Positions 1,447 through 15,313 of a DNA stretch of 64,000 nt are shown here, piece by piece (positions within the stretch are counted from its first letter, which is position 1; the number at the start of each line of letters is the position of its first letter). The DNA comes from Cyanophora paradoxa CCMP329. Taxonomy: Eukaryota; Plantae; Glaucophyta. The notes beneath the pieces were generated by a model that was given only the letters and a program-made list of their open reading frames with translations, made no database searches and was not told the origin of the DNA. The stretch covers positions 124,001 to 188,000 of the forward strand of contig QPMI01000169.1 in assembly GCA_004431415.1 (NCBI GenBank). Direction: 5' to 3'. The position numbers and the translations under genes are program-made.

Positions 1447-4400
1447 CTAGGAGTGTGCGTCGAGCCAGGAGGGCCCGAAGCCGAGGGAGACCTCGACGCG
1501 GACGCCGTCGAGGGGCAGGGCGCCCGTCATCTCCCCCCGCACGATCTCCTCCACACGCTCCCGCTCCCCGGGCGCCACCTCCAGCACCAGCTCGTCGTGC
1601 ACCTGCCGGCCCGACGCCCCGCGGCCTCGGCGAGGTGCTCGGGGCGCCCGCTCGGGGCCGGGGGCACCTGGAGGAGGAGCCGGCTGGCGAGGCCCTCGCG
1701 CTGCAGCGCCCCGTGCACCCCCACCATCGCGATCCTGCGCCGGGGGTCAGGGGGCGGCCGCAGGGCCCGCGGGGGGTGGCGCCGGGGCGCGCTTGATCAT
1801 GTCGGCCTGGGTGCCCTGGATGGGCGTGTTGATGGCGACGCGGGCGGCCGAGGCCGACTCGAGCTTGTTCCGCGAGTTGATGAGGCGCACGTGCCGCCGC
1901 CGGCCCAGGAGCGTCGAGGCGTACCCCCGCTCGCGGCACTGGGCCTTGAGCTCCTCGAGGAGGCGGAGGACGCCCGGGTGGGAGGCGGCGTAGGCCGCCA
2001 TCAGCGCCTTGGCCGTCCCCCGGTCCACCTTGAGGGACTGGGCGAGCCCGTGCGCGGTGATGCCGTACGGGATCGAGTAGTTGACCTCCTTGGCCTTGCG
2101 CCGCTGCTCGTCCGTGACCTCGCCGGGGCCCACGCCGAACATCGCCGCCGCCGTGCGCCGGTGCACGTCCTCCCCCTCCCGGAAGGCCGCCAGCAGCGCC
2201 TCGTCCTGGCTCTGGGGCGGGAGGGTGAGGGGAGAGCAGAGCTGAGGGGCTTGGAAGGGGGGCGTGCCATGGAGGCGATGATGCGGAGCTCGATCTGGGA
2301 GTAGTCGGCGCAGAGGAGGCCCCAGCCGGGGCGCGCCACGAAGGCGCGGCGGACGCGCCGGCCGAGCTCGTCCCGCACGGGGATGTTCTGCAGGTTCGGG
2401 CTCGAGCTCGAGAGCCGCCCCGTCGCCGTCACCGTCTGCCCCCCCGCCCCTTAGACGAAACCCGGAGCCGAGCCGATGCAGAGCAGAGCGGGCTGTGGGG
2501 GACCTGGTTGAAGGTGGTGTGGAGGCGGCCGGTGCGGGGGTCGGCGAGGGCGAGCAGGCCCTCCACGTAGGTCGAGCGGAGCTTGGCGAGGGCGCGCCAC
2601 TCGACGACGGCGGCGGGGAGCGCGTGCTGGCCCTTCAGCGCCTCCAGCGCCGCCTCGTCGGTCGCCCGCCGGCCGCCGCGGGTGCGCCGGGTCGCCTCGA
2701 GCCCGAGCTCGTCGTAGAGGAGCTCGGCGAGCTGCTTGGGGGAGGCGGGGTTGAAGTCGGGGCGCCCGGGGGCGGCGGCGGCGATGCGGGCGCGCAGCCC
2801 GGCGAGGTCGCCCTCGAGCTGGGCGCCGAGGGCCTCGAGGAGGGGCCGGTCGAGGAGGACGCCCTCCTCCTCCATGTCCGCCAGCACCCGCACCAGCGGC
2901 ATCTCCACCGCCGCCGCGTACGACTCGAGGCCCACCTCCCGCAGCCTCCCCTCCAGCGCCTCCGCAGCCCGCAGCGCGCACTCCACCCGCGCCCCCGCCC
3001 ACGCGCCCAGCGCCTCGGGGCCGGCGCCCGGGGGCGGGGCCGGGGGCGGGGCGGGGAGGGCGAGGCGGGCGGCGAGGGCCTCGAGGTCGTGGCGGCTGCC
3101 CTCCTCGGGCCAGATGAGGTAGGAGGCGACGCCGACGTCGAGCAGGCCGCCCCGCAGCTCGATGCCCAGCGAGCGGAGGGCGCGGGCCGAGGCCTTGAGG
3201 TCGGCCCCCACCTTGAGCACGGCGGCGTCCTCGAGGACCTCGCGGAGGACGCCGGCGGCCACCGCGGGGGGCAGCCGCCGCTCCCCGCCCTCCGCCTCCC
3301 CCACCGGCACCAGCACCGCCCCGCCCTCCCCGCTGGTGAAGCAGAGGGCGGCCAGCCGCCCGCCCTCCACCAGCGTCGAGATCGCCAGCCGGCCCCGCTG
3401 CGCACCCGCTCGACCCCGCGGGGGGCGGCGGCGGCGGGGCGGGGCCGGCACCTCCCTGGCCTCACGCGCGAGGCGCATGAGGGTGCCCACCCTCACCTCC
3501 AGCGCCGCCGCCCCCAGAGCGCCCCCGCCGCTCCCATCCGGCGATGCCCCCTCCGCCGCCGCCGCCTTCTTGCGGCCGCGCTTGGGCGCCGCCGCCTCGC
3601 CGGCGGGGGCGGAGGGGTCGCGGGAGGGTGCGGGGCCCTTGGGGGGGAGGCGGCAGAGGGCCCTGCAGCGGGCGACGAGGGAGGGCCTGCCGGGGGGCGT
3701 CGGGGCGGGCAGCGGGGCGGGCGGCGGGGGGCGCACCCGAAGTTGAGGGAGGCGAGGAGGGGGAGGAGGGCGTCGGGGTCGGGGCCCCGCCGCGGCAGCG
3801 CGTCAAAGTCCAGCAGCTCCGCCGGCAGCGCCACGTCCTGCCCGACGTCAGGGGCCCGGGGAGAGGGGGCGAGGGACGGGCGGGGAGGGGTACGGTGGCG
3901 ATGCGGAGGACGGCCTTGGCGACGGCGAGGGCCTCCCGGCTCGCCTCCAGCGCCGCCCGGTGCTGCCGCGCCGTCAGCGCAGGCGGGGCGGGGGGGCGGG
4001 GCGGGGGGGCGGGGGCGGGGGGGCGGGCCCTGGGGGAGGGGACTTCCGGGAGGCGGCGGAGGAGCTCCTCGACGGGCCCGAACTGCTGCAGCAGCGCCGG
4101 CGCGCTCTTCTCCCCGATCCCCCGCACCCCCGCCACGTTGTCGCTCTTGTCCCCCTGCCCGCCCCGCCCCACTCGCTGGCGGGGCGGGCCGGGGGCGGGG
4201 GGCGGGGGCGGACGACGAGGGCGAGGTAGTCGACGAAGAGGGCGGGCTCGAAGCCGCGCGCCTCGCGGAAGGCCTCCTCCGTGCGCCGCTCCAGCTCGTC
4301 CCCGGCCCCGGCCCCGGGGGCCCCGTTGCGCAGCACGACGATGCCCGGCCGCAGCAGCTGCTCGAAGTCCTTGTCCATCGACACTGCGCCCCCGCCCGCC

Positions 4401-5364
4401 CGCCCCCGGCCCCCGTGGGCGAGGGCGAGGGCGCGGGCGCAGGGCGGGCGGGGCGGGCGGACGGATGAAGACGTCGGTGCCGGCGGCGCGGGCGGCGAGG
4501 GCCATGGTGCCGATGACGTCGTCCGCCTCCACGCCCGCCTGCTCCACCACCGCCAGCCCCAGCGCCTCCGCTGCCCCCCGCCCCCCTCGCCGCGGGGCCG
4601 GCCGGCTGGCGGGCGGGGGCCGGCGGGGCGCACCGATGCGCTTGACGTAGGGCATGCCCTCCTGCAGCTCCTCCGGCATCTTGTCCCGCGTCGCCTTGTA
4701 GTCCGCCATCACCCGCCGCCGCCCCGCCGAGCCCCCTGCCCCCCGTCCACGCCCCTCGGCGGCGCCCGCCGGGGCGGGGCGGGGCGGGCGGCGGGGCGGG
4801 GCGCACCGGGGGCGTCGAAGACGACGACGACGCGGCGCTCCACGCCGTCCGGCTCCGCCTCCCCGGCCCCGATCACGCGCAGGAACTTGAGCATGCTGTT
4901 GAGGAAGCCGAAGGGGGCCTTGGTGGAGACGCCTGCGCGCGCCGTCGCGCCGGCTCGTCTGCGCGAGCGCGGCGGGGAGGGGAGGACGGCGGCGCGCGCC
5001 CTCCTGGTTCGTCATCTCGGAGGCCTTGCCGAGCGAGAAGAGGGAGCGGTAGGCGAGGTTCGTCCCGTCCACCAGGTAAAGCTCCTGCGGCGTCCGCTCA
5101 GCGCGGCCCTCGACGGCGGGAGCGGCGCGATCGCACTCTTTTGGCGGGCGCCTGCTTCGTGCTGACGTCCGGCGCGCGCGTATGCGCAGCCCGCACGGCG
5201 CTCGCGGCGTCGGGGAGGGCGGGCGGCGCCGGGGTCTGGAGCTCGGAGCGCCAACTCGGCCGTGCGAACGCGTTCCGCCCGAGCTTCGGGGGCTTGAACC
5301 CGAATCCACGCAAGCTTGGCCGCACGCGGGGCGCCCGCCGTGCGAGGGCGAGAACCGACAGCAT
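1447..5364 (-). CDS. polA: Bacterial-type family A DNA polymerase I (5'-3' exonuclease + degenerate 3'-5' exonuclease + polymerase) with N-terminal organellar presequence; ~14 introns
   Basis: Spliced motifs: [45 protein letters not shown] (5'-3' exo); [86 protein letters not shown] (polymerase). Start [19 protein letters not shown]. Confidence 0.95.
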
Positions 5365-5535
5365 GCTCGCCGCTCCAGGGGCCGGCCGGCTTGACCAGAC
5401 GGATCTGTGTGTCGGCGCGGGTGCCACAAACGTATGCGTCATAAGCCCGCGACGCCGCACGCCCAATAGCCCGCCTACGCCCGGCTCGGCGGGGGTACCG
5501 GCGAAGGAGCTTGACCCGCGAAGTCGGCCCGAGCG

Positions 5536-6216
5536 ATGTTCTCCACCGTGGCGCCCCTCGGGGCCGTCCACCCGCCAGCGACGGCCGCTCTCACCGCGGC
5601 ACGCTGCCACGGGGGGGCCGCGAAACTAGATCGCCGAACCGCGAAGCTGGGCCGCAGCCGCGTATTCACGGGCGTCGCGGGGCCCACCGACAGCATCCAG
5701 CTTGCACGGCATCCTCGATGGAGGCGTTGTCCGGCCTCTCCGTCCGTTGTGTGCGCGGCGGACGGCGGTGCAGGTCGCACTGATTTCCTCAAGTCAACCG
5801 ATCCGAGCGAGAGCCCAGCGATGCCGCCGGCAAACCCGTACTACACAGAATGGCAAGACGGGTGAGCTCGGAGATCGCCCGCGCCCCAAGCTCGCCGCTG
5901 ATTACCCGGTCAGCGCGGCAGCGGTATCGTCGGAGTGCAAGCGTCAGCCGCTCACAAAAGAGAAGCTGATCCTGACGAGAGGGACGTGGGACTGGCAGGA
6001 GCACAGCGCGACGCGGCATAGGCTCGTCGGCCGCATGCGGTTCGAGAACCTGCACCCGCGCCACTACGTGTACATTCCCGAGGCACGCCCCGCGCGCCCA
6101 GCCGCCACTCGTTGGCCGCTCCCGTCGCTCAGGCGGCGCCGCAGATCAAGGCCGAAGTGCAGCTCCTCGCGTCGGAGAGCACGGGCCGAGGCGTGGACAA
6201 CTGCAAGGTCCGCCGC

Positions 6217-6273
<57 letters not shown>

Positions 6274-7761
6274 CGAGCAGGGGGCCGGGGCGCAGGTGCG
6301 GGTGAAGATCACTTCGGAGCACCCGGACGAGGAGAGCCCGGCGCGGCCCGACGGCTTCTGGTTCGCCTACATCCTCCAGGTGCCGCCCCGCCCTCGACGC
6401 CGCGCGCCGCCGTGCGGCGCGCCGAGGCGGCGGGGCGCAGCACAAGAAGTACACGAACGTGCTGGTGGAGATCGAGATCGAGGCGGAGGAGGGGACGGAC
6501 CTGACCCACCTCCAGTCCGCCTACCTCCAGGTCCCCGCCCCGCCCGCTCCCGGCCGCCCCCGCGCCTGCACCGCTCTGAGCGGGCCGCAGGTGCACTACA
6601 CGGTGTACGGGCGGAACGGGGTGGACGTGCGGACGCAGGCCGTCGTCCTGCCGATGACCTACGTGCCCCCGGGGCCGCCCCAGGCGCTGCCCCAGAACTG
6701 GCAGCGCCGCACGAACGCGATGGCGCGGGCCCCCTCGCCTCCGCCTCTCCTGCGCGCCTCACCCGCGCGGGGCAGGTGCTGCCGGTCAAGACGCACCTGC
6801 TGACGCACCTCGACGACCCCGTCCGCATCGTCGAGCGGCGCGTCCGGCTTCGCTTCGCCCCTCCCCTCGGCCCCGAGGAGGCCCCGCTGAGGGGGCGGGG
6901 TGCGCAGGTACATCATGCCGCTGTACAAGCCCGGGGACATCGTGGCGATCGCGGAGTCGCCGCTGGCGGTGATGCAGGGGCGGTACCGGCACTTCCGGGA
7001 GGTCCGCTACACCTGGCTCGCCGTCCTCCTCTGCCGCCTCTTCGACAACGCCTCCTCCCTCTCCACCGCCGTCGGTCCGCCCCGCCCCGAGCGGACCCGC
7101 CCCGCCCCGCCTTGCCGCCCCCCGCGGCCTCCGACGGCGCGGCGCGGCAGGGATGCAGTCGCTGATCGACATCGTGGGCCCGCTGCGGGTGATCTTCGCG
7201 GCGATCGGGGCGGTCATCCTGCGCGTCCTCTTCAAGCGCCGCGGCGCCTTCTACGAGCTCGCCGGCGAACAGGCGAGCGGCCCCCGCGCCGGCCTCCGCA
7301 GCTCCAGGCGGCCGGAGCTGACGCCGGGCGTGCTTGCTCGCTCGGGCAGGCGCGGCTGATCGACGAGGTGACGGGCTCGATGCCGCCCTACGACCAGTGC
7401 GTCGTCCTCGGCCCCGAGAACGCCGTCCAGGTCCCCGCCCCCGCCCCGCCCCGCCCCGCCTGCCTCCACCTCGCTGAGCGGGGGCCGCCGCGGTGCGCTG
7501 GGGCAGGCGGTGCGGGAGATCCGGGCGCGGACGGGCGTCGAGGCGGCCGTCGTCGACGTGAACGACCTCCACCGCGTCAAGGCGCGCCCCACGCGACCCG
7601 CCCCGCCCGCTCTCCCCTGCTGAGGGGGGCCGGGGCCGGGGGTGCAGGTGCTGGCGGGGACGCCCGGGGTACGGGACGCGTTCCTGGGGGAGGTCCTCCT
7701 CGACAACCCCGCCGGCAACGCCAACCAGCAGACCCCCCTCGTCCTCGTCCGGCCCCTCTGA
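5536..7761 (+). CDS. Cyanobacterial-type F420-0:gamma-glutamyl ligase (CofE)-like protein with predicted plastid transit peptide; 11 introns
   Basis: Exon 1 MFSTVAPLG..VVCAAD..WQDG is transit-peptide-like. Spliced C-terminal domain [110 protein letters not shown] matches from recall the family annotated this way in cyanobacteria and Firmicutes. Confidence 0.85.
6211..6272 (+). repeat. (GCC)n microsatellite within an intron
   Basis: Near-perfect ccg/gcc run between the donor (TGCAAG|gtccgc) and acceptor (gcgcag|GTGCGG). Confidence 0.9.
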
Positions 7762-8339: not shown

Positions 8340-11300
8340 ATGGGTGAGCGGCCCGCGGTCGCGGAAGCCAGCGACGCGAACTGACCATGCATTCGTCCTC
8401 GCACGCGCAGCGCTCCTCCTCCAGGCTTCCCGCCGGTTAGCTGTGCCGCTTGCTCGCTCTGCGCGCTCATCGCTGACCCGCGCCAGATGCCACCTCCAAT
8501 GGGCTTCCCTCCCGGCATGCCGCCGCCTCGCGGCATGCCGCCTCCTCCGCCCGGCATGCCGCCTCCGCATTTCGGCATGCCGTTCCCTCCGCCCGGCATG
8601 CCGCCGCCCAGGATGCCTCCCGGCATGCCGCCTCCCGGCATGCCGCCGCCTCTCGGCATGCCGCCGCCTCCCGGCATGCCGCCGCCTCCCGGCATGCCGC
8701 CGCCTCCCGGCATGCCGCCTCCGGGCTGGATGCCGCCGCCCGGCATGCCGCCGCCGGGCATGCCGCCGATGCTGCCGCCGGGCATGCCCCCGCCGCTGCC
8801 GCCGGGGCAGCAGCCGCCGCCGCCGCCGGGGCAGCAGGCGGGGGCGGGCAAGGCGGTGAAGGCGGAGCCGGGGGAAGGCGAGGTGAAGGTGGAGGACGGA
8901 AGCGACGAGAGCAGCGGCAGCGAGGAGGAGGACGAGGGCGAGGGCGAGGCCGCCCGCGGGCCCCGAAGGCCCCGGGCCGCCCCCCGGCATGCCCCCGGGG
9001 ATGCATCCCGGGCCGCCCCCGGGCCGCCCCCGCCGGGCTGGATGCCGCCCCCCGGCATGCCCGTGCCGCCCGGCATGTTCCCCCCGGCATGCCGCCCCCC
9101 GGCATGTTCCCCCGGGCATGCCCATGCCCCCGCCGGGGATGCCGCCCCCGGGGATGCTCCCGCCGGGGATGCCGCCCGGGGGCGGGCTGCTGGGGCCGGG
9201 CCCCTCGCCGCAGGACCTGCAGGCGATGATGGCGGCGCAGTCGATCGTCGCCGCCGTCGCCGGGCAGGCCGCCGCCGCCATGCCCCCGCCCATGCCCCCC
9301 GGCTTCCCCCCCGCCGGCCCGCCCCCCTCCGACGAGGAGATCGGCAAGGCCTGGGTCCGCCCCGCCGCCCCGCGCGCGCCCCCCGCGCGTCTGACCGCCT
9401 CTGGCGCAGTCGGAGCACGTGTCGCCGCAGGGCCCCAAGTACTACTGGAACCCCCTCCTCCGGCAGGCCACCTGGGCCAAGCCCCCGGGCTACAAGAAGC
9501 CCGTGCGCCCCCGCCCCGCGCCCCGCCCCCCGAGCTCGTTCCCGCCTGAGCGCCGGGGCGGCCGCAGAAGGGCCGCAAGTACACCAAGCCCGAGGCCATG
9601 TGCGCCCCCCGGGCCCCGCCCCGCCCGCCCCGCCGCCCCGCCCGCGCCGGCTGAGGGGGCGGGGGCAGCGAGCCGCTGGGGAACTCGGGGTGGTGCAAGG
9701 TGCGCTCCGTCGAGGGGCGGGAGTACGTCTACCACCCCGCCACCGCCACGGCGCTCTGGAAGCTGCCGTCCGAGGTCGAGCAGGCCCTCGCCGCCGCCGC
9801 CGCCCAGCTCGCCGCCATGCAGGCCGCCGCCCCGCCCGAGTGGCACCAGCACCAGCAGCAGGCGCTGCAGCCGCCGGTGCCGGCGGGGCCGACGGAGGAG
9901 GAGCTGGCGGAGATGGAGGAGGAGCGGCGGGCGCAGGAGGAGGCGGAGCGGGACATGCGGCTCGCCATGGAGGCCGAGCGCGCCGAGGTCATCCTCGCCC
10001 AGGCCAAGGCCCAGCAGACCCGCGGCGCCTCCTCCATCGTCAAGCGCAAGCTCGCCGCGTCCGCCCCGCCCCCGCGCCCGCCCCCGCCCGCCCCGTCGAG
10101 GGCCCCGCTGACGCGCCGCCGCCCGCAGCGAGGAGGAGGCCCCCGCCGCGCCGGCCCCGGCCCCGGCCCCGGCGCAGGCTGCGGCGGCGCCGGCGCAGCG
10201 GGAGGGGGCGGGGGAGGAGGAGGAGAGGGAGGAGGCGGGGGAGGAGGCGTCGCGGGTGTCTCCGGAGGAGCGGGTGGAGGGGTTCCGGGCGATGCTGCGG
10301 GAGCGCGGCGTGGCGGCCTTCGGCACGTGGGAGAGGGAGCTCCCCAAGTTCCTCTCCGACCCCCGCTACCGCCGTCCGCCCCCCCCGCCCCGCTCCCCTC
10401 TCCCCGCCGCCCCGCTCAGCTCGGCGATCAGTGCTGAGGACGCTGGAGGAGCGGCGGGCGGTCTTCGAGCAGTTCTCGCGCACGCGCGCGGAGGAGGAGC
10501 GGAGGGAGCGGGTGGCGCGGAAGAAGGCGGCGGCCGAGGGCCTCCGGGCGCTCCTGGACGAGCTGGCGGCGGCGAAGCGGATCACGCACACGACGACGCT
10601 GCGGGAGCTGCAGGAGGAGGCGCAGCGGGAGGCGCGGGCGCGGGCGGCGCTGGCCGGGCTGGACGAGAAGGAGGCGGAGGCGATCCTGCGGGAGCGCACG
10701 GAGCCGCTGCGGCGGGCCGAGGAGGAGCGCGCCCGCTCCGAGCGCGAGAAGCTCAGGGCCGACTTCCACCGCGTCCGCCCGCCCCGCCCCGCCCCGCCCC
10801 GCCCCGCCCCGCCCCGCCCCGCCCCGCCCCGCCCCGCCTCCCCTCTGATCGGGGCGGGGCAGATGCTGCGGGAGCTGGGGACGGTGACGACGGCCTCCAA
10901 GTGGCTCGTCGTCCGCAAGTTCATCGAGCTCGACGCCCGCTACAAGGCCGTCTCCTACCCCAGGCCCGCCCCCGCCCCCGCCCCGGCCCCGGGCCCCGGG
11001 CCCCCGCTGACGCCGGCGGGGCAGCCTGCGGGAGGAGTTCTTCGCCGACTACCTCAAGCTGCTCAAGGAGGAGCAGGAGGGGGACCGCCGCCGCGCCGAG
11101 GCGGAGCGGGCGGAGCGGGCGCGCAAGGAGGCGGAGGAGGCGGCGGCGCGGCGGCGGGCAGAGGAGGAGGCGCGGGAGGCGCAGCGGCGGGAGCGCGAGG
11201 CGGCGCTGGCGGCGAAGCGCGAGGCGCTGCCGGCGGCGCGGGAGGCCTACAGGGCGCTGTTGGGGGAGGCCGTGACCGACCACGAGGCCTCCTGGTCGAC

Positions 11301-12109
11301 CATGAAGGAGGCCCTCAAGGCCGACCCGCGCTTCGCCGCCCCGCCCCTCGACCTCACCCCCGAGGAGGCCGCCGCCGGCGCCGCCCCCGCCGCCTCCGAC
11401 CTCGACCCGTACGTGGTCGCCGCGGGGGCGCGGGCGGCGACGGAGCGGGAGCGGCTGTTCCGGGAGCACTGCGCGGCCCTCTTCCTGGAGCGGCGGGCCG
11501 CCTTCCTGGCGCTGCTGGGCGAGGCGGCGGCCTCGGAGGCCGGCCTGCCCCTCGACGCCCGCTGGCGCGACGTCGAAGGGCGCCTCGAGGCCGACCCCCG
11601 GTACCCCCCTTCCTCTTCCTCCCCCCGCTCCGGCCCGCGGGCGCTGAGCCGAGCCGCTCGGCAGGTACGGGGCGCTGGGGTCGGAGGCGGCGCGGAAGCG
11701 GGCGTTCGAGCGCTTCCAGGCGGACCAGCTGAAGGCGGCGAAGGAGGCGCTCGCGGCGCTGCTGCGGGAGACGGCGGGGATCGACGCGGGGACGCCCACC
11801 GAGGGCTCCGGCCTCGACAAGGCCAAGGACCTCCTCCGCGTGCGCCCCCGCCCCCCGCCCCGCCCTCGTCTCTTTCCTCTGCTGAGGAGGGGCGGGCAGG
11901 GGGACGCGCGGTGGAAGCGGCTGGAGCCGTTCCGGAAGGAGCGGGAGGGGGCGCTGGTGGACCACGTGCGGGCCCTCCGCAAGGCCGCCGGCCTCCCCGA
12001 GCGCGACAGGGAGAAGGAGGAGCGCAAGCGCCGCCGCTCCCGCTCCAGGTCCCGCTCCCGCTCCCGGTCGAGGGGCCGCGACCGCGACGAGAAGAGCCGC
12101 CGCCGGTAG
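8340..12109 (+). CDS. TCERG1/PRP40C-like splicing/transcription factor (Pro-rich N-terminus, WW domains, FF domains, RS tail)
   Basis: GMPPPP repeats; WW-like GPKYYWNPLLRQATWAKP and GREYVYHPATATALWKLP; FF-like [29 protein letters not shown] and WSTMKEALKADPRF; C-terminal RSRSRSRSRS; TAG at 12107-12109. Confidence 0.85.
8513..8790 (+). repeat. Coding tandem repeat (GGCATGCCGCCGCCTCCC-like, 15-18 nt unit) encoding GMPPP(P)
   Basis: Many consecutive ggcatgccgcc units in frame with the Pro-rich N-terminus. Confidence 0.9.
10776..10837 (+). repeat. (CCCCG)n intronic pentamer array
   Basis: Lies within intron ~10773-10862 (CGC|gtccgc ... ctgatcggggcggggcag|ATG). Confidence 0.9.
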
Positions 12110-13240
12110 CGGCCCCCGCGCCCCGCCGCCCCGCGCCACGCGCCCTGCGTCGTCACAGTGCAGTGTGCAATTCGGCAATCGAGATGACAGAGAGTGTGAA
12201 CCTGTGTCTCACGGTAAACGGATATGCGTGGGATCCGGAGGCCTCAAAACCTAGCCTCAAAGTTGATCCGGGTCGAGTCGAACAAGGAGGTGCAATTATC
12301 GGATGCCGCCGGGCCGGCCGGCGCCTGTGGCCGCCGGGCTCGAAGTCGAAAGGAGCCTCATGATCATGATCAGGGCCGGGCCTGAACCGGTTAAACTTCG
12401 GACCCGGGAACTCCTGAAAGTTGAAGTCATTCGAAATTCGCTGAGCCTCGGAGCTAGCCTAGTAGGCCGGGCTGCGCATGCGCTACTATTGCGGGCCGGT
12501 CACCGGGTACTCAAGCCTTGTACTACGGTAGGCCCGGGCCCTGAGCCTCTCAGTTAGAGTCTAGGCTTTATGTCGTGAAGGGCCCGGGCCCGGGGGCTTG
12601 CATTCATGCATGATCGCGTCTTTAGCCACCTGAGCCTCCGAGGCTCGGAGCCATAAGCTTGCGCTTGCAAGTTGGAGACTCCAAGACCTGATCCGAGATA
12701 TCGATGATCATGCCATGATGACTCGATGCCATGATGATGATCATGAGGCCCGAGGCCCCGAGCCATGAGCCTCCGGGCCTCGCCAAGTCGAAGGCTTCAT
12801 GATCAAGCCTTGCCAAGTTGGTTCAATTGAACTGAGTGAAGGCTCTATCGATATTTCCAGAGCCTCGGTTTACCCCTGCAACTGGGAGGCAGGCTGCATG
12901 CCGCAGTCACTGAGTGCACAGGCCCGATATTGATCGCGAGCTAGGCCTAGGCTGGCAGCCTGGCAGCAATGCAGCCTGGCACTGCGGCAGCTGCAGCCCC
13001 CCGGGCCCCGGCCGCCGCCCGCGCGGGGCGGGGTCACTGATTTACTAAGTTAGTGAATCAGCGATCCTCCTGGCCTCCAGACTCATGCACTGAGCTGGGA
13101 GCCACGGAATCCAACTCTTTTCCCCCCAGTGGAATGCATATGTACCCCCAAAGATTTTGAGAGCTGTACCCCGGGCTCACCCCTCGTTCAAGACTCCCGG
13201 GCGCGTGTACTGTATGTGCTCGGATCCCTAACGGCGCGTG

Positions 13241-15313
13241 CTACGTGTAGACACGATCGAACGCGAAGCGGGCCGACGGGAGGACCCTAGCCAGCTCCTC
13301 GCACGTCCCGAGCACGTCCCGCCCGAGCACCTCGTCCTCGTAGGACTCTCGGCACTTGCAGGTGAGGCGGACCTGCGCGTGCTCTCGGGCGGGCGCGGCG
13401 GGGGTGGCCGAAGGGGCGGCGGCGCAGGTGCGCCTCGAGCCTCTCTGCGCGGCAGGCGGCGAAGGCGGAGAGGCCTGCGAGCCATCCGCCCGCAAGGGCC
13501 TCCTCGCCGACGTCGGACCCGAGAATGAGGCGGTGGAGGGGTACGGAGGCGAGCACCGCCGCCGCTTCCGCGGGGATCGCTTCGGCCGGGTCCAAGTGGA
13601 CGGTCAGCCAGACGCGCCCGGGGGCCCCCTGCGCCAGCGCCGCGAGCGCGGGGAGCCGCTCCATCAGCGCGGGGAGCGCCTCTGGCCAGGTCGCCGTCTC
13701 TGCCGGGGCACACCCTAAGGGAGGGGCGGGGCGGGGGGCCGGGGCGTAGCGCGCACGCGGGAGGAGGCAGAGGGCGAGGGCGGGGCTGCGCTCGAGGGCC
13801 CTCGCGTAGCCGGCGAGCGGGACGCGGGCCTCCCACACGCTCAACGCGTCCAGCGCCTCCACGCGCCGCAGCGCCGGGCACGAGCCGAGCTCGGCCACGT
13901 CGCACCCGTCCACCGCCTCTGTCAGCTGCGGGGCGGGGCGTTGGGGCGGGGCCGGCGGGGCGGGGCGGGGCGGGCGGGCGGTGAAGTGGCTATGGAGGCG
14001 CTCGAGGGCGGCCAGGTGCGGGAGGGCCTCGAGGGCGCCGGGGCAGAGCTCCGCCCACTCGCGCGGCGGGCCGAAGCGAAGCCTGCGCGCTGCTCAGCGG
14101 GGCGAGGCCGCGGGGAGAGGGCGGGGGGGAGGGAGGCGCGCACTCTCTCAGAGAGAGCGCGGCGGGAGCGTCGGCGAGAGCCTGGAGCAGGGGCGCCGCG
14201 TCGCGATCGGGGGGAAATTCCCCCCGCGGGCGGAGGCAGAGCTCGAGGCGCTCGAGGGCGGGGAGGTCGGCCAGGCCCGCCGCCTCCCCGTACTCCTCCA
14301 CCGCGATCTCCACCTGCGCCCCGCGTCGGAGGCGCGGGGGGCCGGCGGGGGCGCAGGAGGCGCGGACCCGCTTGAGGCGCGGGAGGCACCCGGCGAGGGC
14401 GAGCGTGCCGGACCGAGCGAGGCAGAGGGAGCCGCAGCCGACGAGGGAGAGGCTCTCGAGCTCTGAGAGCCGGCCGAGGCGGCGCTCCCAGTCGTCGTCG
14501 GGGTCGGAGCTCGCCTCCAAGTTGCCATGTGTGGGCGAGCCGCGCAGTGCGAGGCTGCGAAGTGCGCGGCGGGATGCGTCGAGTGCGATGAAGATGCGGT
14601 CCAGGAACGCGCCGCTCATCACAGAGCTCGCTTTGAAGATCAGCTCGAAGCCGCCGAGGCCTCCGCTCGCCGACACGAACGCCCGGACAAGCGACACGAT
14701 GGAATCGCAGGTGCACGAGCAAGACCTCCCAAGCACCTCCAGACGGAGCGACGCGCCGGGGGCCACGCGGATCCAGCGGCGACTTGACACGAAACCGCCC
14801 GGCTGCTGCTGCACTCGCCCCGGTTGCCGGTCCTCGGACACGCTGTCCTCGTGCTCAGCGCCGACGACAACGCCCGCGAGCCGATCCGCCCTCTCCGCGC
14901 CCCACACGGCCACGTCCAGCCGGCTCCATACGCGCGCGTTCAGAGCGCTCGAGTTGCGCCAGCGACGGCAGACAGCACGCGCGTTGGAAGCCGACTGCAG
15001 ATCCAGACTCTCAAGAATTTGCGAGAGGGTCTCGTCGGGCAGCTGGTCGAACGGCGATGGTCCTGCTGCAGCTTCTTGCGCGGCTTCGGCGTCGGAAATG
15101 CCCGTTTACCTCTGTTTGCTGGACTCCGGAGACGCCAACGCTGCCTCGAGCAGCTCAGCAGCCGCGCCGGCCAGCGTGCTCCCTCTCCGCCCCGCGTACT
15201 GCACGAGGCGCGCGTGGATGCCTGCGCGATCGGTTCAGCACATCACTCGATGTCCGACTCACTGCGACCACTTGCGCACCGGCAGGCAGCTCGATGATTC
15301 CTCTCGCCTCCAT
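13241..15313 (-). CDS. F-box protein with LRR-like region
   Basis: F-box motif SPFDQLPDETLSQILESLDLQSASNARAVCRRWR near 14950-15060; downstream LRR-like LSELESLSLVGC, LPRLKRV, LPALERLELC, CPALRRVE. The 5' exon structure is uncertain. Confidence 0.7.

Follow-up and report, generated by a model that had tools for sequence, protein, structure and literature searches.

A spliced nuclear gene in the window (the whole stretch of 64,000 nucleotides of Cyanophora paradoxa DNA analysed here) encodes a full-length, two-domain match to an unnamed CofE-like family (profiles A2 and A4), with all the invariant residues of the catalytic domain kept. Judged from sequence, several independent associations tie this family strongly to peptidoglycan (PG), and the host, a glaucophyte, has a plastid with a PG wall. 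The reading favoured here, to which we would give a probability of about 0.4, is that the protein is a PG-associated CofE-like ligase which joins an amine to a carboxylate in the stem peptide of a PG precursor. Such an enzyme would work in the manner of CofE, a nucleotide triphosphate activating the carboxylate and the amine being joined to it. The carboxylate would sit in the stem peptide of a membrane-bound PG precursor, and the reaction would take place where the inner membrane faces the cytoplasm (stroma). Among possible sites the strongest candidate would be the D-Glu alpha-carboxyl, and for Cyanophora the amine would most likely be putrescine or N-acetylputrescine. It is we who infer the ligase chemistry, the substrate and the amine; the specific reaction, addition of an amine to the D-Glu of lipid II, appears plausible.

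The gene is real. A spliced gene had been proposed in a preliminary description made from the letters alone, and it is borne out by a public gene model, P0001 (eukprot tig00000711_g3413.t1), of 399 amino acids and 100% identity to the window (word search with one exon). The model maps exactly onto 12 exons of the plus strand between positions 5821 and 7761, with the stop codon at 7759-7761 (Table 1). The 11 introns measure 52-88 nt, six of them having GT-AG and five GC-AG borders, and the GC content of the 12-exon gene is strongly periodic by codon position (GC1/2/3 = 0.69/0.41/0.95).

Upstream of the public start, an ATG at 5536 followed by TTC opens an in-frame extension, which was at first taken for a Phe-initiated exon resembling a transit peptide. 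Part of that claim stands. The extension begins Met-Phe and has a typical composition, being rich in Ala, Arg, Pro, Gly, Ser and Thr with a net charge of +7; glaucophyte plastid-targeted precursors have a transit peptide with phenylalanine near the N-terminus, and green-plant orthologues carry N-terminal extensions of 50-100 amino acids. The coding signal, by contrast, is partial. The first 55 codons are coding-like (GC3 0.85 versus GC1 0.71 and GC2 0.65; p = 0.015 against background), GC3 is 0.57 in the last 40, and the public model, which begins at an internal Met (ATG 5821), leaves the extension out. The open frame from 5536 to 5820 itself means little, since stop-free stretches are commonplace in a window of 75% GC, where two thirds of six-frame residues lie in stop-free stretches of at least 110 amino acids. 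On the reading favoured here, the Cyanophora protein would be targeted to the plastid.

Table 1. Positions in the window of the CofE-like gene, its candidate upstream extension and an intronic repeat.
Feature	Positions	Strand	Description
Candidate plastid transit peptide, else 5' UTR	5536..5820	+	95 codons, stop-free, in frame with public ATG 5821, begins Met-Phe
Exon 1 of public model	5821..5861	+	Residues 1-13 plus 2 nt; donor GTGAGC; exact mapping
Exon 2	5914..6082	+	Residues 14-70; helix and start of beta-sandwich; GC donor
Exon 3	6145..6207	+	Residues 71-91
(CCG)21 microsatellite	6210..6272	.	Within intron 3; outside the protein
Exon 4	6296..6379	+	Residues 92-119; N-domain motif R-x-D-G-[FY]-W; R108, D110, W113 invariant
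Exon 5	6441..6530	+	Residues 120-149
Exon 6	6591..6722	+	Residues 150-193; end of beta-sandwich and linker; GC donor
Exon 7	6776..6837	+	Residues 194-214; start of CofE-fold domain (T199, H200, D206); GC donor
Exon 8	6908..7074	+	Residues 214-270; G-D...Q-G-R motif common to A. fulgidus CofE; R239 invariant in all architectures
Exon 9	7151..7272	+	Residues 270-310; conserved hydrophobic helix 274-292; GC donor
Exon 10	7350..7430	+	Residues 311-337; invariant D315; P-P-Y-D motif
Exon 11	7507..7581	+	Residues 338-362; invariant D354, D357 (V-D-x-N-D-L); GC donor
Exon 12	7648..7761	+	Residues 363-399 and stop codon; invariant N-P-x-G-N and T-P motifs

By alignment, the likeness of the public model to cyanobacterial proteins of about 390 amino acids is far beyond chance (identity 46-51%, with 92-97% of P0001 aligned and E values of roughly 1e-100 to 1e-109), and the alignment crosses every exon junction without gaps. 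The database name of these proteins is 'F420-0:Gamma-glutamyl ligase', and the Cyanophora protein had been described as a full-length member under that name. The end-to-end match to the so-named proteins holds, but the protein falls below the curated CofE thresholds, so that 'full-length F420 ligase' reflects database names only. The Pfam profile PF01996 scores 17.6 bits on the public model against a cut-off of 25 and covers only profile positions 3-87 of 218, whilst NCBIfam, TIGR01916 (CofE) included, gives no match. The cyanobacterial orthologues are likewise under the Pfam and NCBIfam thresholds for CofE, and exon-by-exon Pfam scans return a single weak match, in exon 8. The suspicion that the family is mis-annotated thus proves sound, and the name is unsafe. 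The window protein is not a true CofE, and its family is most likely, from these comparisons, a branch of the CofE superfamily and not an F420 enzyme.

A PDB sequence search with the public model and the full-length family profile A2 found nothing. The catalytic-domain profile A4 reaches the A. fulgidus CofE chains by sequence (E 3e-4), aligning the G-D...G-R motif. The comparison of structures with CofE which the preliminary description had called for recovers the CofE fold: in an AF2 model of the Cyanophora protein (pLDDT 88, pTM 0.87), the C-domain matches 2PHN, 2G9I and 7ULD in the PDB by Foldseek with probability 1.0, TM (target) 0.48-0.56 and 13-15% identity, the likeness past the first ~70 residues of the catalytic domain being one of fold only. 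An extra N-terminal beta-sandwich domain precedes the CofE-fold domain. Residues R239, D315, D354 and D357, together with the N-P-x-G motif, show no variation in 20/20 sampled architectures; all are found in the window protein, which also keeps R108/D110/W113 in its N-domain and N382-G385 in its C-domain. These conserved residues resemble those of an active site.

The proposed link to PG gains weight from three sides: fusions of the catalytic domain to cell-wall enzymes, adjacency to murI, and a eukaryotic distribution parallel to that of plastid PG pathways. The family profile recognises the fused catalytic domains with E 1e-38 to 1e-64, and their partners are MurF (321.6 bits with TIGR01143, whose cut-off is 288.6), Amidase_3 (six clusters at 50% identity), a PgaB/IcaB-type polysaccharide deacetylase, a PepV-type M20 dipeptidase and a GNAT. 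One Amidase_3 fusion gene adjoins a gene for a MurJ/SpoVB-type flippase. The Amidase_3 fusions are without signal peptide or transmembrane segment and so look cytoplasmic, like recycling enzymes. TPR fusions also exist; the neighbourhood of one of these was uninformative, as was that of a non-cyanobacterial full-length member.

A search of bacterial gene neighbourhoods, suggested at the outset, turned up PG-themed neighbours in both groups concerned, murI in Sporomusa and mltG in cyanobacteria. The presence of the family in Negativicutes, put forward in the preliminary description, is confirmed for Sporomusa, where proteins of the WP_075757283 type match the catalytic domain with E 2.9e-64. 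In four Sporomusa genomes the gene order is glutamate racemase (murI), an ORF with a transmembrane segment and a beta-domain, and the CofE-like gene. By hhalign, the ORF immediately upstream shows homology with the N-domain (E 1e-5), the two domains thus being encoded by adjacent genes. Further genes of the Sporomusa operon (HGD-D-like, activase, hydantoinase-like and a PF00850 deacetylase) give no clear reading.

Relatives occur in no fewer than 549 species genomes, all cyanobacterial among those sampled. Downstream of the cyanobacterial genes, on the same strand, lie a tandem-GNAT acetyltransferase gene (66/72 species loci), ruvX (58/67 loci) and yceG/mltG (51/61 loci), whilst a cruF/cruG-like pair (PF04240 and GT2) stands divergently upstream in 39/68. 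By Foldseek the tandem GNAT resembles generic small-molecule N-acetyltransferases only, giving no substrate clue. The CofE-like-GNAT fusion was considered as a Rosetta stone for the cyanobacterial gene pair and rejected, the two GNATs being related at superfamily level only (hhalign probability 0.4%). An N-terminal hydrophobic anchor is present in 75/78 cyanobacterial copies, with 0.2 K/R before it and 3.0 after. This asymmetry places the cyanobacterial copies, as a prediction, in an N-out/C-in orientation with the enzyme on the cytoplasmic face of the membrane, where lipid II is made. The eukaryotic copies are without a membrane anchor.

The nature of the amine reaction is suggested by known PG chemistry. 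In cyanelle PG, N-acetylputrescine is attached to the C-1 carboxyl of D-Glu, and in Negativicute PG the same carboxyl carries cadaverine or putrescine, the polyamine being needed for outer-membrane tethering through OmpM. Sporomusa belongs to the Selenomonadales, which have been studied for PG polyamines. The literature consulted on the Negativicute and cyanelle activities names no gene for the ligation of the amine, and a literature search for a link between polyamine, PG and F420 ligase found no paper. Nor was any report of PG-bound polyamine in cyanobacteria found in the literature; the cyanobacterial outer-membrane tether is thought to bind a pyruvylated polysaccharide. MurT-gatD, the known system of D-Glu amidation, is reported to be ubiquitous within certain classes of cyanobacteria, and a cyanobacterial DD-peptidase (PBP-A) prefers D-iGln peptides. 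That the family is so widespread in genomes which are, as sampled, cyanobacterial, a group known to have murT-gatD, speaks against the D-Glu-amine idea in its simple form. Against it too stand the degradative fusion partners (Amidase_3 and M20 dipeptidase), which fit recycling as well as synthesis. That the family might carry out a plain ammonia amidation of D-Glu in cyanobacteria, an idea prompted by the D-iGln-specific PBP-A, was dropped because murT-gatD is reported there.

A serious if somewhat doubtful possibility is that the family is linked to PG through another reaction: the ligation or religation of amino acids in stem-peptide recycling or turnover, a reaction at the carboxyl of meso-DAP or of the terminal D-Ala, or one on UDP-MurNAc-peptides instead of lipid II. 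Fusion partners both synthetic (MurF) and degradative (Amidase_3 and the PepV-type dipeptidase) would be accommodated, as would the cytoplasmic look of the Amidase_3 fusions. The MurF fusion points to nucleotide-linked precursors, D-Glu amidation is already covered by murT-gatD in some cyanobacteria, and the preference of the DD-peptidase is in keeping with such a role. On the other hand, the anchor in cyanobacteria and the split Sporomusa system fit a membrane-bound substrate better than soluble intermediates. The family also occurs in lineages with an amine on the D-Glu of their PG (the glaucophyte, and Sporomusa among the Selenomonadales), and an acetylated amine more easily explains the recurring acetyl-transfer and deacetylase neighbours.

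The Cyanophora gene most probably, as far as sequence allows, came down from the cyanobacterium that gave rise to the plastid. The endosymbiont origin proposed earlier agrees with the tree, in which eukaryotic and core cyanobacterial copies fall in one starred clade and the streptophyte branching matches the species tree. Besides the glaucophyte, the eukaryotes named as carriers are Klebsormidium, Chlorokybus, Mesostigma, Mesotaenium, Closterium, liverworts, mosses, Diphasiastrum, Psilotum, Cryptomeria, Micromonas pusilla, Chloropicon, Pycnococcus, Pyramimonas and Tetraselmis, a spread which takes in early green branches, algae of the streptophyte line, bryophytes and one lycophyte, fern ally and conifer each. 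No angiosperm is among the best 120 matches, though one conifer is. Complete plastid PG pathways have been reported from Micromonas pusilla, class VII prasinophytes, streptophyte algae, bryophytes, ferns and gymnosperms (PMC4815162, PMC7455551, PMC9434261). Where these surveys cover the carriers, the eukaryotic distribution of the family largely parallels that of the published pathways. The CofE-like family does not figure in the tables that supplement van Baren et al.

A pattern of ancestral presence with loss in angiosperms and core chlorophytes is common to other gene sets too, many ancestral genes having been lost in this way. Some weight must be given to a role in another envelope or membrane process, for example the modification of carotenoid glycosides or lipids, the PG-like pattern then being the coincidental retention of an ancestral gene. 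The cruF/cruG-like pair upstream in over half of the cyanobacterial loci would agree with this, the ruvX-DUF1292-yceG block is widely conserved in its own right, and the TPR fusions and two further neighbourhoods are uninformative. However, the cruF/cruG pair is on the opposite strand and is missing in Kovacikia, Microcoleus and others which retain the downstream genes, plants keep the gene yet make no myxol glycosides, and several independent cell-wall fusions in non-cyanobacterial lineages are hard to put down to chance. A role of this kind is accordingly improbable.

Cyanobacteria and plants make the FO chromophore but are not known to make F420, and both have a canonical FolC, which counts against a function in cofactor tailing. 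Such a function, whether that of a gamma-glutamyl ligase of genuine F420/deazaflavin type or, as in Chlamydia, that of a folylpolyglutamate synthase of the FolC2 type, would suit the CofE fold, the shared N-terminal motif, the database name and the complementation of an E. coli folC mutant by the chlamydial COG1478 member (PMC1971073), but it has very little likelihood given the missed Pfam gathering score and NCBIfam models, the failure of the full-length profile to find the CofE of the PDB, the added membrane-anchored beta-sandwich domain, the cell-wall fusion partners and annotated neighbourhoods, cyanobacterial and Sporomusa alike, with no cof or fol genes.

Should the amine ligase reading be correct, the family would be a clonable candidate for two activities left for decades with no gene assigned, the incorporation of N-acetylputrescine in the cyanelle, described in 1996-1999, and the addition of cadaverine or putrescine in Negativicutes. 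It would supply both a marker and a gene to knock out for work on the PG, still poorly understood, of moss, fern, conifer and prasinophyte plastids, and thousands of 'F420-0:gamma-glutamyl ligase' entries in organisms without F420 would need correction. Whatever the substrate, the recurrent joining of this domain to MurF and Amidase_3 marks a step, still to be characterised, in the cell-wall metabolism of many bacterial phyla. A bolder proposal, which we put forward as speculation that may well prove wrong, is that this one family installs the amines of the D-Glu alpha-carboxyl, which are N-acetylputrescine in the muroplasts of glaucophytes and either cadaverine or putrescine in the Negativicutes, and is an eleventh conserved component of plastid PG, kept wherever a complete pathway with a PBP survives. 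If so, the PG of cyanobacteria and of prasinophyte, moss and conifer plastids would carry a so-far undetected amine, possibly acetylated by the partner tandem GNAT.

A number of parallels can be drawn with known systems. CofE of A. fulgidus (2PHN/2G9I/7ULD) shares with the window protein the catalytic fold, its first ~70 residues including the G-D...G-R motif and, presumably, the NTP-dependent formation of an amide from a carboxylate and an amine. The window family differs in its N-terminal beta-sandwich, to which a membrane anchor is added in the cyanobacterial copies, and in its cell-wall fusions and genomic context in place of cof genes; its hosts are not known to make F420. Chlamydial FolC2 (CT611) provides a precedent for an enzyme of CofE fold which ligates amines to carboxylates other than that of F420 (PMC1971073), although CT611 clusters with folate genes whilst the window family has another architecture and no folate neighbours. 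MurT/GatD is an analogue of the proposed reaction, since it modifies the D-Glu alpha-carboxyl in an ATP-dependent manner, acting at the cytoplasmic face once lipid II has been formed. Its fold is unrelated (a Mur-ligase domain and a glutaminase), Pfam finding no Mur ligase middle domain (PF08245) in the window protein, and the two systems coexist in some cyanobacteria. An activity incorporating N-acetylputrescine was reportedly described in cyanelle envelope membranes by Pfanzagl and Loffelhardt in 1999. The cyanelle and Negativicute amine activities agree with the proposed enzyme in organism or lineage, membrane location, lipid-linked stage and D-Glu C-1 site; they are known as activities and not as sequences.

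The gene under study encodes P0001, the public model of the window's own protein (EukProt tig00000711_g3413.t1; 399 amino acids), which was retrieved by a search with one exon, taken as a region of stop-free frame, and then used as the gene model; other searches of the spliced gene were made exon by exon. P0001 maps exactly to 12 exons (see table), separated by 11 introns of 52-88 nt, six of them GT-AG and five GC-AG. G+C content is about 75% across the whole window, and the introns are short and G+C-rich; the coding sequence, counted by codon position on the joined exon coordinates, has a GC3 of 0.95 versus a GC2 of 0.41. P0001 is 46-51% identical to cyanobacterial proteins of about 390 residues (E about 1e-100 to 1e-109), and the alignment has no gaps at exon junctions. 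From the exact mapping, the GC3 periodicity and the gap-free alignment, both the gene and a full-length product of cyanobacterial type are certain, as the preliminary description had it. The share of GC-AG introns is unusually high; a high share of GC donor sites has likewise been reported in Micromonas pusilla.

Exons of the P0001 gene and other features of the window (positions in nucleotides)
Feature	Position	Strand	Remarks
Divergent neighbour, bacterial-type 5'-3' exonuclease	3462-5426	-	PF02739 and PF01367; spliced, introns open in frame
ATG of proposed extension	5536	+	Met-Phe-Ser-Thr...
Possible unannotated intron	within 5701-5820		
Exon 1	5821-5861	+	
Exon 2	5914-6082	+	GC donor at 6083
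Exon 3	6145-6207	+	
(CCG)21 microsatellite	6210-6272		perfect-looking; entirely within intron 3
Exon 4	6296-6379	+	
Exon 5	6441-6530	+	
Exon 6	6591-6722	+	GC donor at 6723
Exon 7	6776-6837	+	GC donor at 6838
Exon 8	6908-7074	+	
Exon 9	7151-7272	+	GC donor at 7273
Exon 10	7350-7430	+	
Exon 11	7507-7581	+	GC donor at 7582
Exon 12	7648-7761	+	
Tandem repeats, periods 18, 27 and 51 nt	8508-9177		minus strand reads Gly/Met/Pro-rich repeats; no Pfam match

A Phe-initiated, transit-peptide-like first exon had also been proposed, beginning 285 nt upstream of the public start. The extension is open, in frame, rich in Ala, Arg, Pro, Gly, Ser and Thr and has a net charge of +7, although open frames are the norm in this DNA. 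The proposal stands as regards frame, Met-Phe start and charge, but coding-like periodicity is confined to the first 55 codons (GC3 0.85, p = 0.015) and is lost in the following 40 (GC3 0.57). A putative transit peptide is nonetheless plausible, since green-plant orthologues have N-terminal extensions of 50-100 residues and protein import in glaucophytes requires an N-terminal Phe.

The AlphaFold2 model of P0001 (pLDDT 88, pTM 0.87; built on 94 relatives) consists of an all-beta sandwich at about residues 30-170, for which Foldseek finds matches to generic Ig-like sandwiches only, and an alpha/beta domain at 190-399, which matches Archaeoglobus fulgidus CofE (2PHN, 2G9I, 7ULD) at a probability of 1.0 and 13-15% identity. 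A catalytic-domain profile built from 20 architectures matches CofE by sequence (E 3e-4), the alignment including a G-D...G-R motif within the first 70 residues. Twelve residues are invariant in the 20 architectures (R239, G279, G301, D315, P323, P332, D354, D357, N382, P383, G385 and P392), and all are present in the window protein. P0001 is not accepted as CofE by curated models: its PF01996 score is 17.6 bits (cut-off 25), the match reaching no further than position 87 of the 218 in the profile, and an NCBIfam scan gave no match. PDB sequences matched neither P0001 nor the full-length family profile. With its CofE fold, weak CofE sequence match, invariant residues and failed curated models, P0001 looks like an active enzyme on a separate branch of the CofE superfamily.

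Relatives occur in at least 549 genomes, scanned at one genome per species; the best 80 of these are nearly all cyanobacterial; a few are MAGs, and one is labelled Sericytochromatia. An N-terminal hydrophobic helix is found in 75 of 78 cyanobacterial copies and in none of 16 eukaryotic ones. It is preceded by hardly any positive charge and followed directly by three Lys/Arg, and by the positive-inside rule the cyanobacterial enzyme is predicted to lie on the cytoplasmic face of the membrane. Lipid I and lipid II are synthesised and modified on this face. A second conserved hydrophobic helix lies within the catalytic domain.

In cyanobacteria, counting loci whose flanks are long enough, the CofE-like gene has downstream of it, in the same orientation, genes for an acetyltransferase of about 400 residues (66/72), ruvX (58/67) and yceG/mltG (51/61); a divergent cruF/cruG-like pair lies upstream in 39/68. 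This pair, cruF-like (PF04240) plus glycosyltransferase-2, is of the myxol-glycoside type (for example, at 5338-7638 of locus L003). The acetyltransferase pairing is kept at four loci where other neighbours are gone (L014, L038, L039, L087). The acetyltransferase is a tandem GNAT (structure model pLDDT 77); its resemblance to MshD, VipF, the clavulanate tandem GNAT and glucosamine N-acetyltransferase marks it, on modelling, as a predicted small-molecule amine acetylase. Four loci from MAGs labelled 'Candidatus Sericytochromatia' (L005-L007, L051) lack the GNAT neighbour; P0114, the protein of L005-L007 and sole such copy in the tree, groups inside photosynthetic cyanobacteria, and the label may reflect a binning or taxonomy issue.

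An exhaustive profile search returned 1154 clusters at 50% identity, 205 of them at E <= 1e-30, in many architectures. In fused proteins the catalytic domain alone is matched (E 1e-38 to 1e-64), and the partners include MurF (TIGR01143, above cut-off), Amidase_3 (six clusters), a PgaB/IcaB-type polysaccharide deacetylase, a PepV-type M20 dipeptidase, a single GNAT and TPR repeats; a MurJ/SpoVB-type flippase gene adjoins one Amidase_3 fusion. The catalytic domain stands alone (207-227 residues) in Thermodesulfobium and in Sporomusa, a member of the Negativicutes. In four Sporomusa genomes a glutamate racemase gene (TIGR00067 above cut-off) is followed by a 180-residue ORF and then the CofE-like gene. 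The ORF has a transmembrane helix and a beta domain with the family's R-x-D-G-Y-W motif. Since it is homologous to the family N-domain (hhalign E 1e-5) and lies directly 5' of the CofE-like gene, the Negativicute system is, judged by homology, the same two-module machine, split, beside a D-Glu-making enzyme. Downstream in 4/4 Sporomusa genomes (9739-14570 at locus L092) are genes for an HGD-D/double-cubane-like protein, an acyl-CoA dehydratase activase, a hydantoinase-A-like protein and, fourth, a PF00850 deacetylase. The family is predicted to be membrane-tethered in bacteria and is repeatedly joined to peptidoglycan enzymes; its CofE-fold enzyme is conserved and probably active, and a link to peptidoglycan is likely.

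CofE superfamily enzymes use an NTP to join a carboxylate and an amine through an amide bond. Here the carboxylate would be one on the stem peptide of peptidoglycan, with the alpha-carboxyl of D-Glu as the leading candidate: this position bears N-acetylputrescine in Cyanophora, in Negativicutes it holds cadaverine or putrescine, and the Sporomusa genes lie next to murI. An acetylated diamine would suit the acetyl-transfer partners: the tandem GNAT of cyanobacteria, the fused GNAT elsewhere and the Sporomusa deacetylase. Several points count against this. No report was found of peptidoglycan-bound polyamines in cyanobacteria, for whose SLH porins pyruvylated polysaccharide is the presumed ligand, yet relatives are present in hundreds of cyanobacterial genomes; murT-gatD, which occurs in some cyanobacterial classes, would suffice to account for the D-iGln that PBP-A specificity implies; and the tandem GNAT and the fused GNAT are not orthologues. 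A role in recycling would also suit the Amidase_3 and dipeptidase partners, the Amidase_3 fusions being without export signals. The D-Glu:amine ligase function remains a tentative candidate, at a probability of about 0.4.

In a maximum-likelihood tree the eukaryotic and core cyanobacterial sequences form one well-supported clade (SH-aLRT 96), the eukaryotic sequences could have a single origin (support 76), and the streptophyte part agrees with the species tree. The tree is consistent with endosymbiotic gene transfer and then vertical inheritance with losses. The named eukaryotic carriers are streptophyte algae (Klebsormidium, Chlorokybus, Mesostigma, Mesotaenium, Closterium), liverworts (Marchantia, Riccia, Calypogeia), mosses (Ceratodon, Sphagnum), the lycophyte Diphasiastrum, the fern ally Psilotum, the conifer Cryptomeria and the chlorophytes Micromonas pusilla, Chloropicon, Pycnococcus/Pseudoscourfieldia, Pyramimonas and Tetraselmis. 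Two very long Closterium models (P0215 and P0233, 857-869 residues) match the family profile several times, contain no further Pfam domain, and may represent tandem copies or merged models. Among the top 120 hits of a Klebsormidium query there is the conifer but no angiosperm; at this sensitivity, the absence of the gene from angiosperms is well supported. Published surveys report a complete plastid peptidoglycan pathway in M. pusilla, class VII prasinophytes, streptophyte algae, bryophytes, ferns and gymnosperms; in M. commoda, Ostreococcus, Bathycoccus and core chlorophytes they describe a reduced one, and they find none in red algae and its loss in most seed plants (PMC4815162, PMC7455551, PMC9434261). 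Compared for carriers and angiosperms, the match to these pathways is close, although such a pattern is common to other ancestral plastid genes, which counts against the ligase proposal.

In the full-text papers searched, no report was found connecting the CofE-like family with peptidoglycan or plastids, and those consulted on polyaminated peptidoglycan assign no gene to the activities that add amines in cyanelles and in Negativicutes. The main value of the family is that it makes these two old open questions directly testable. The fold is known and the functional variant is rated as new; that substrates can change within the CofE superfamily is illustrated by chlamydial FolC2 (PMC1971073). 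P0001 would act like CofE, although it fails the curated scores for CofE membership. MurT/GatD, the one D-Glu-modifying system known, is unrelated to P0001.
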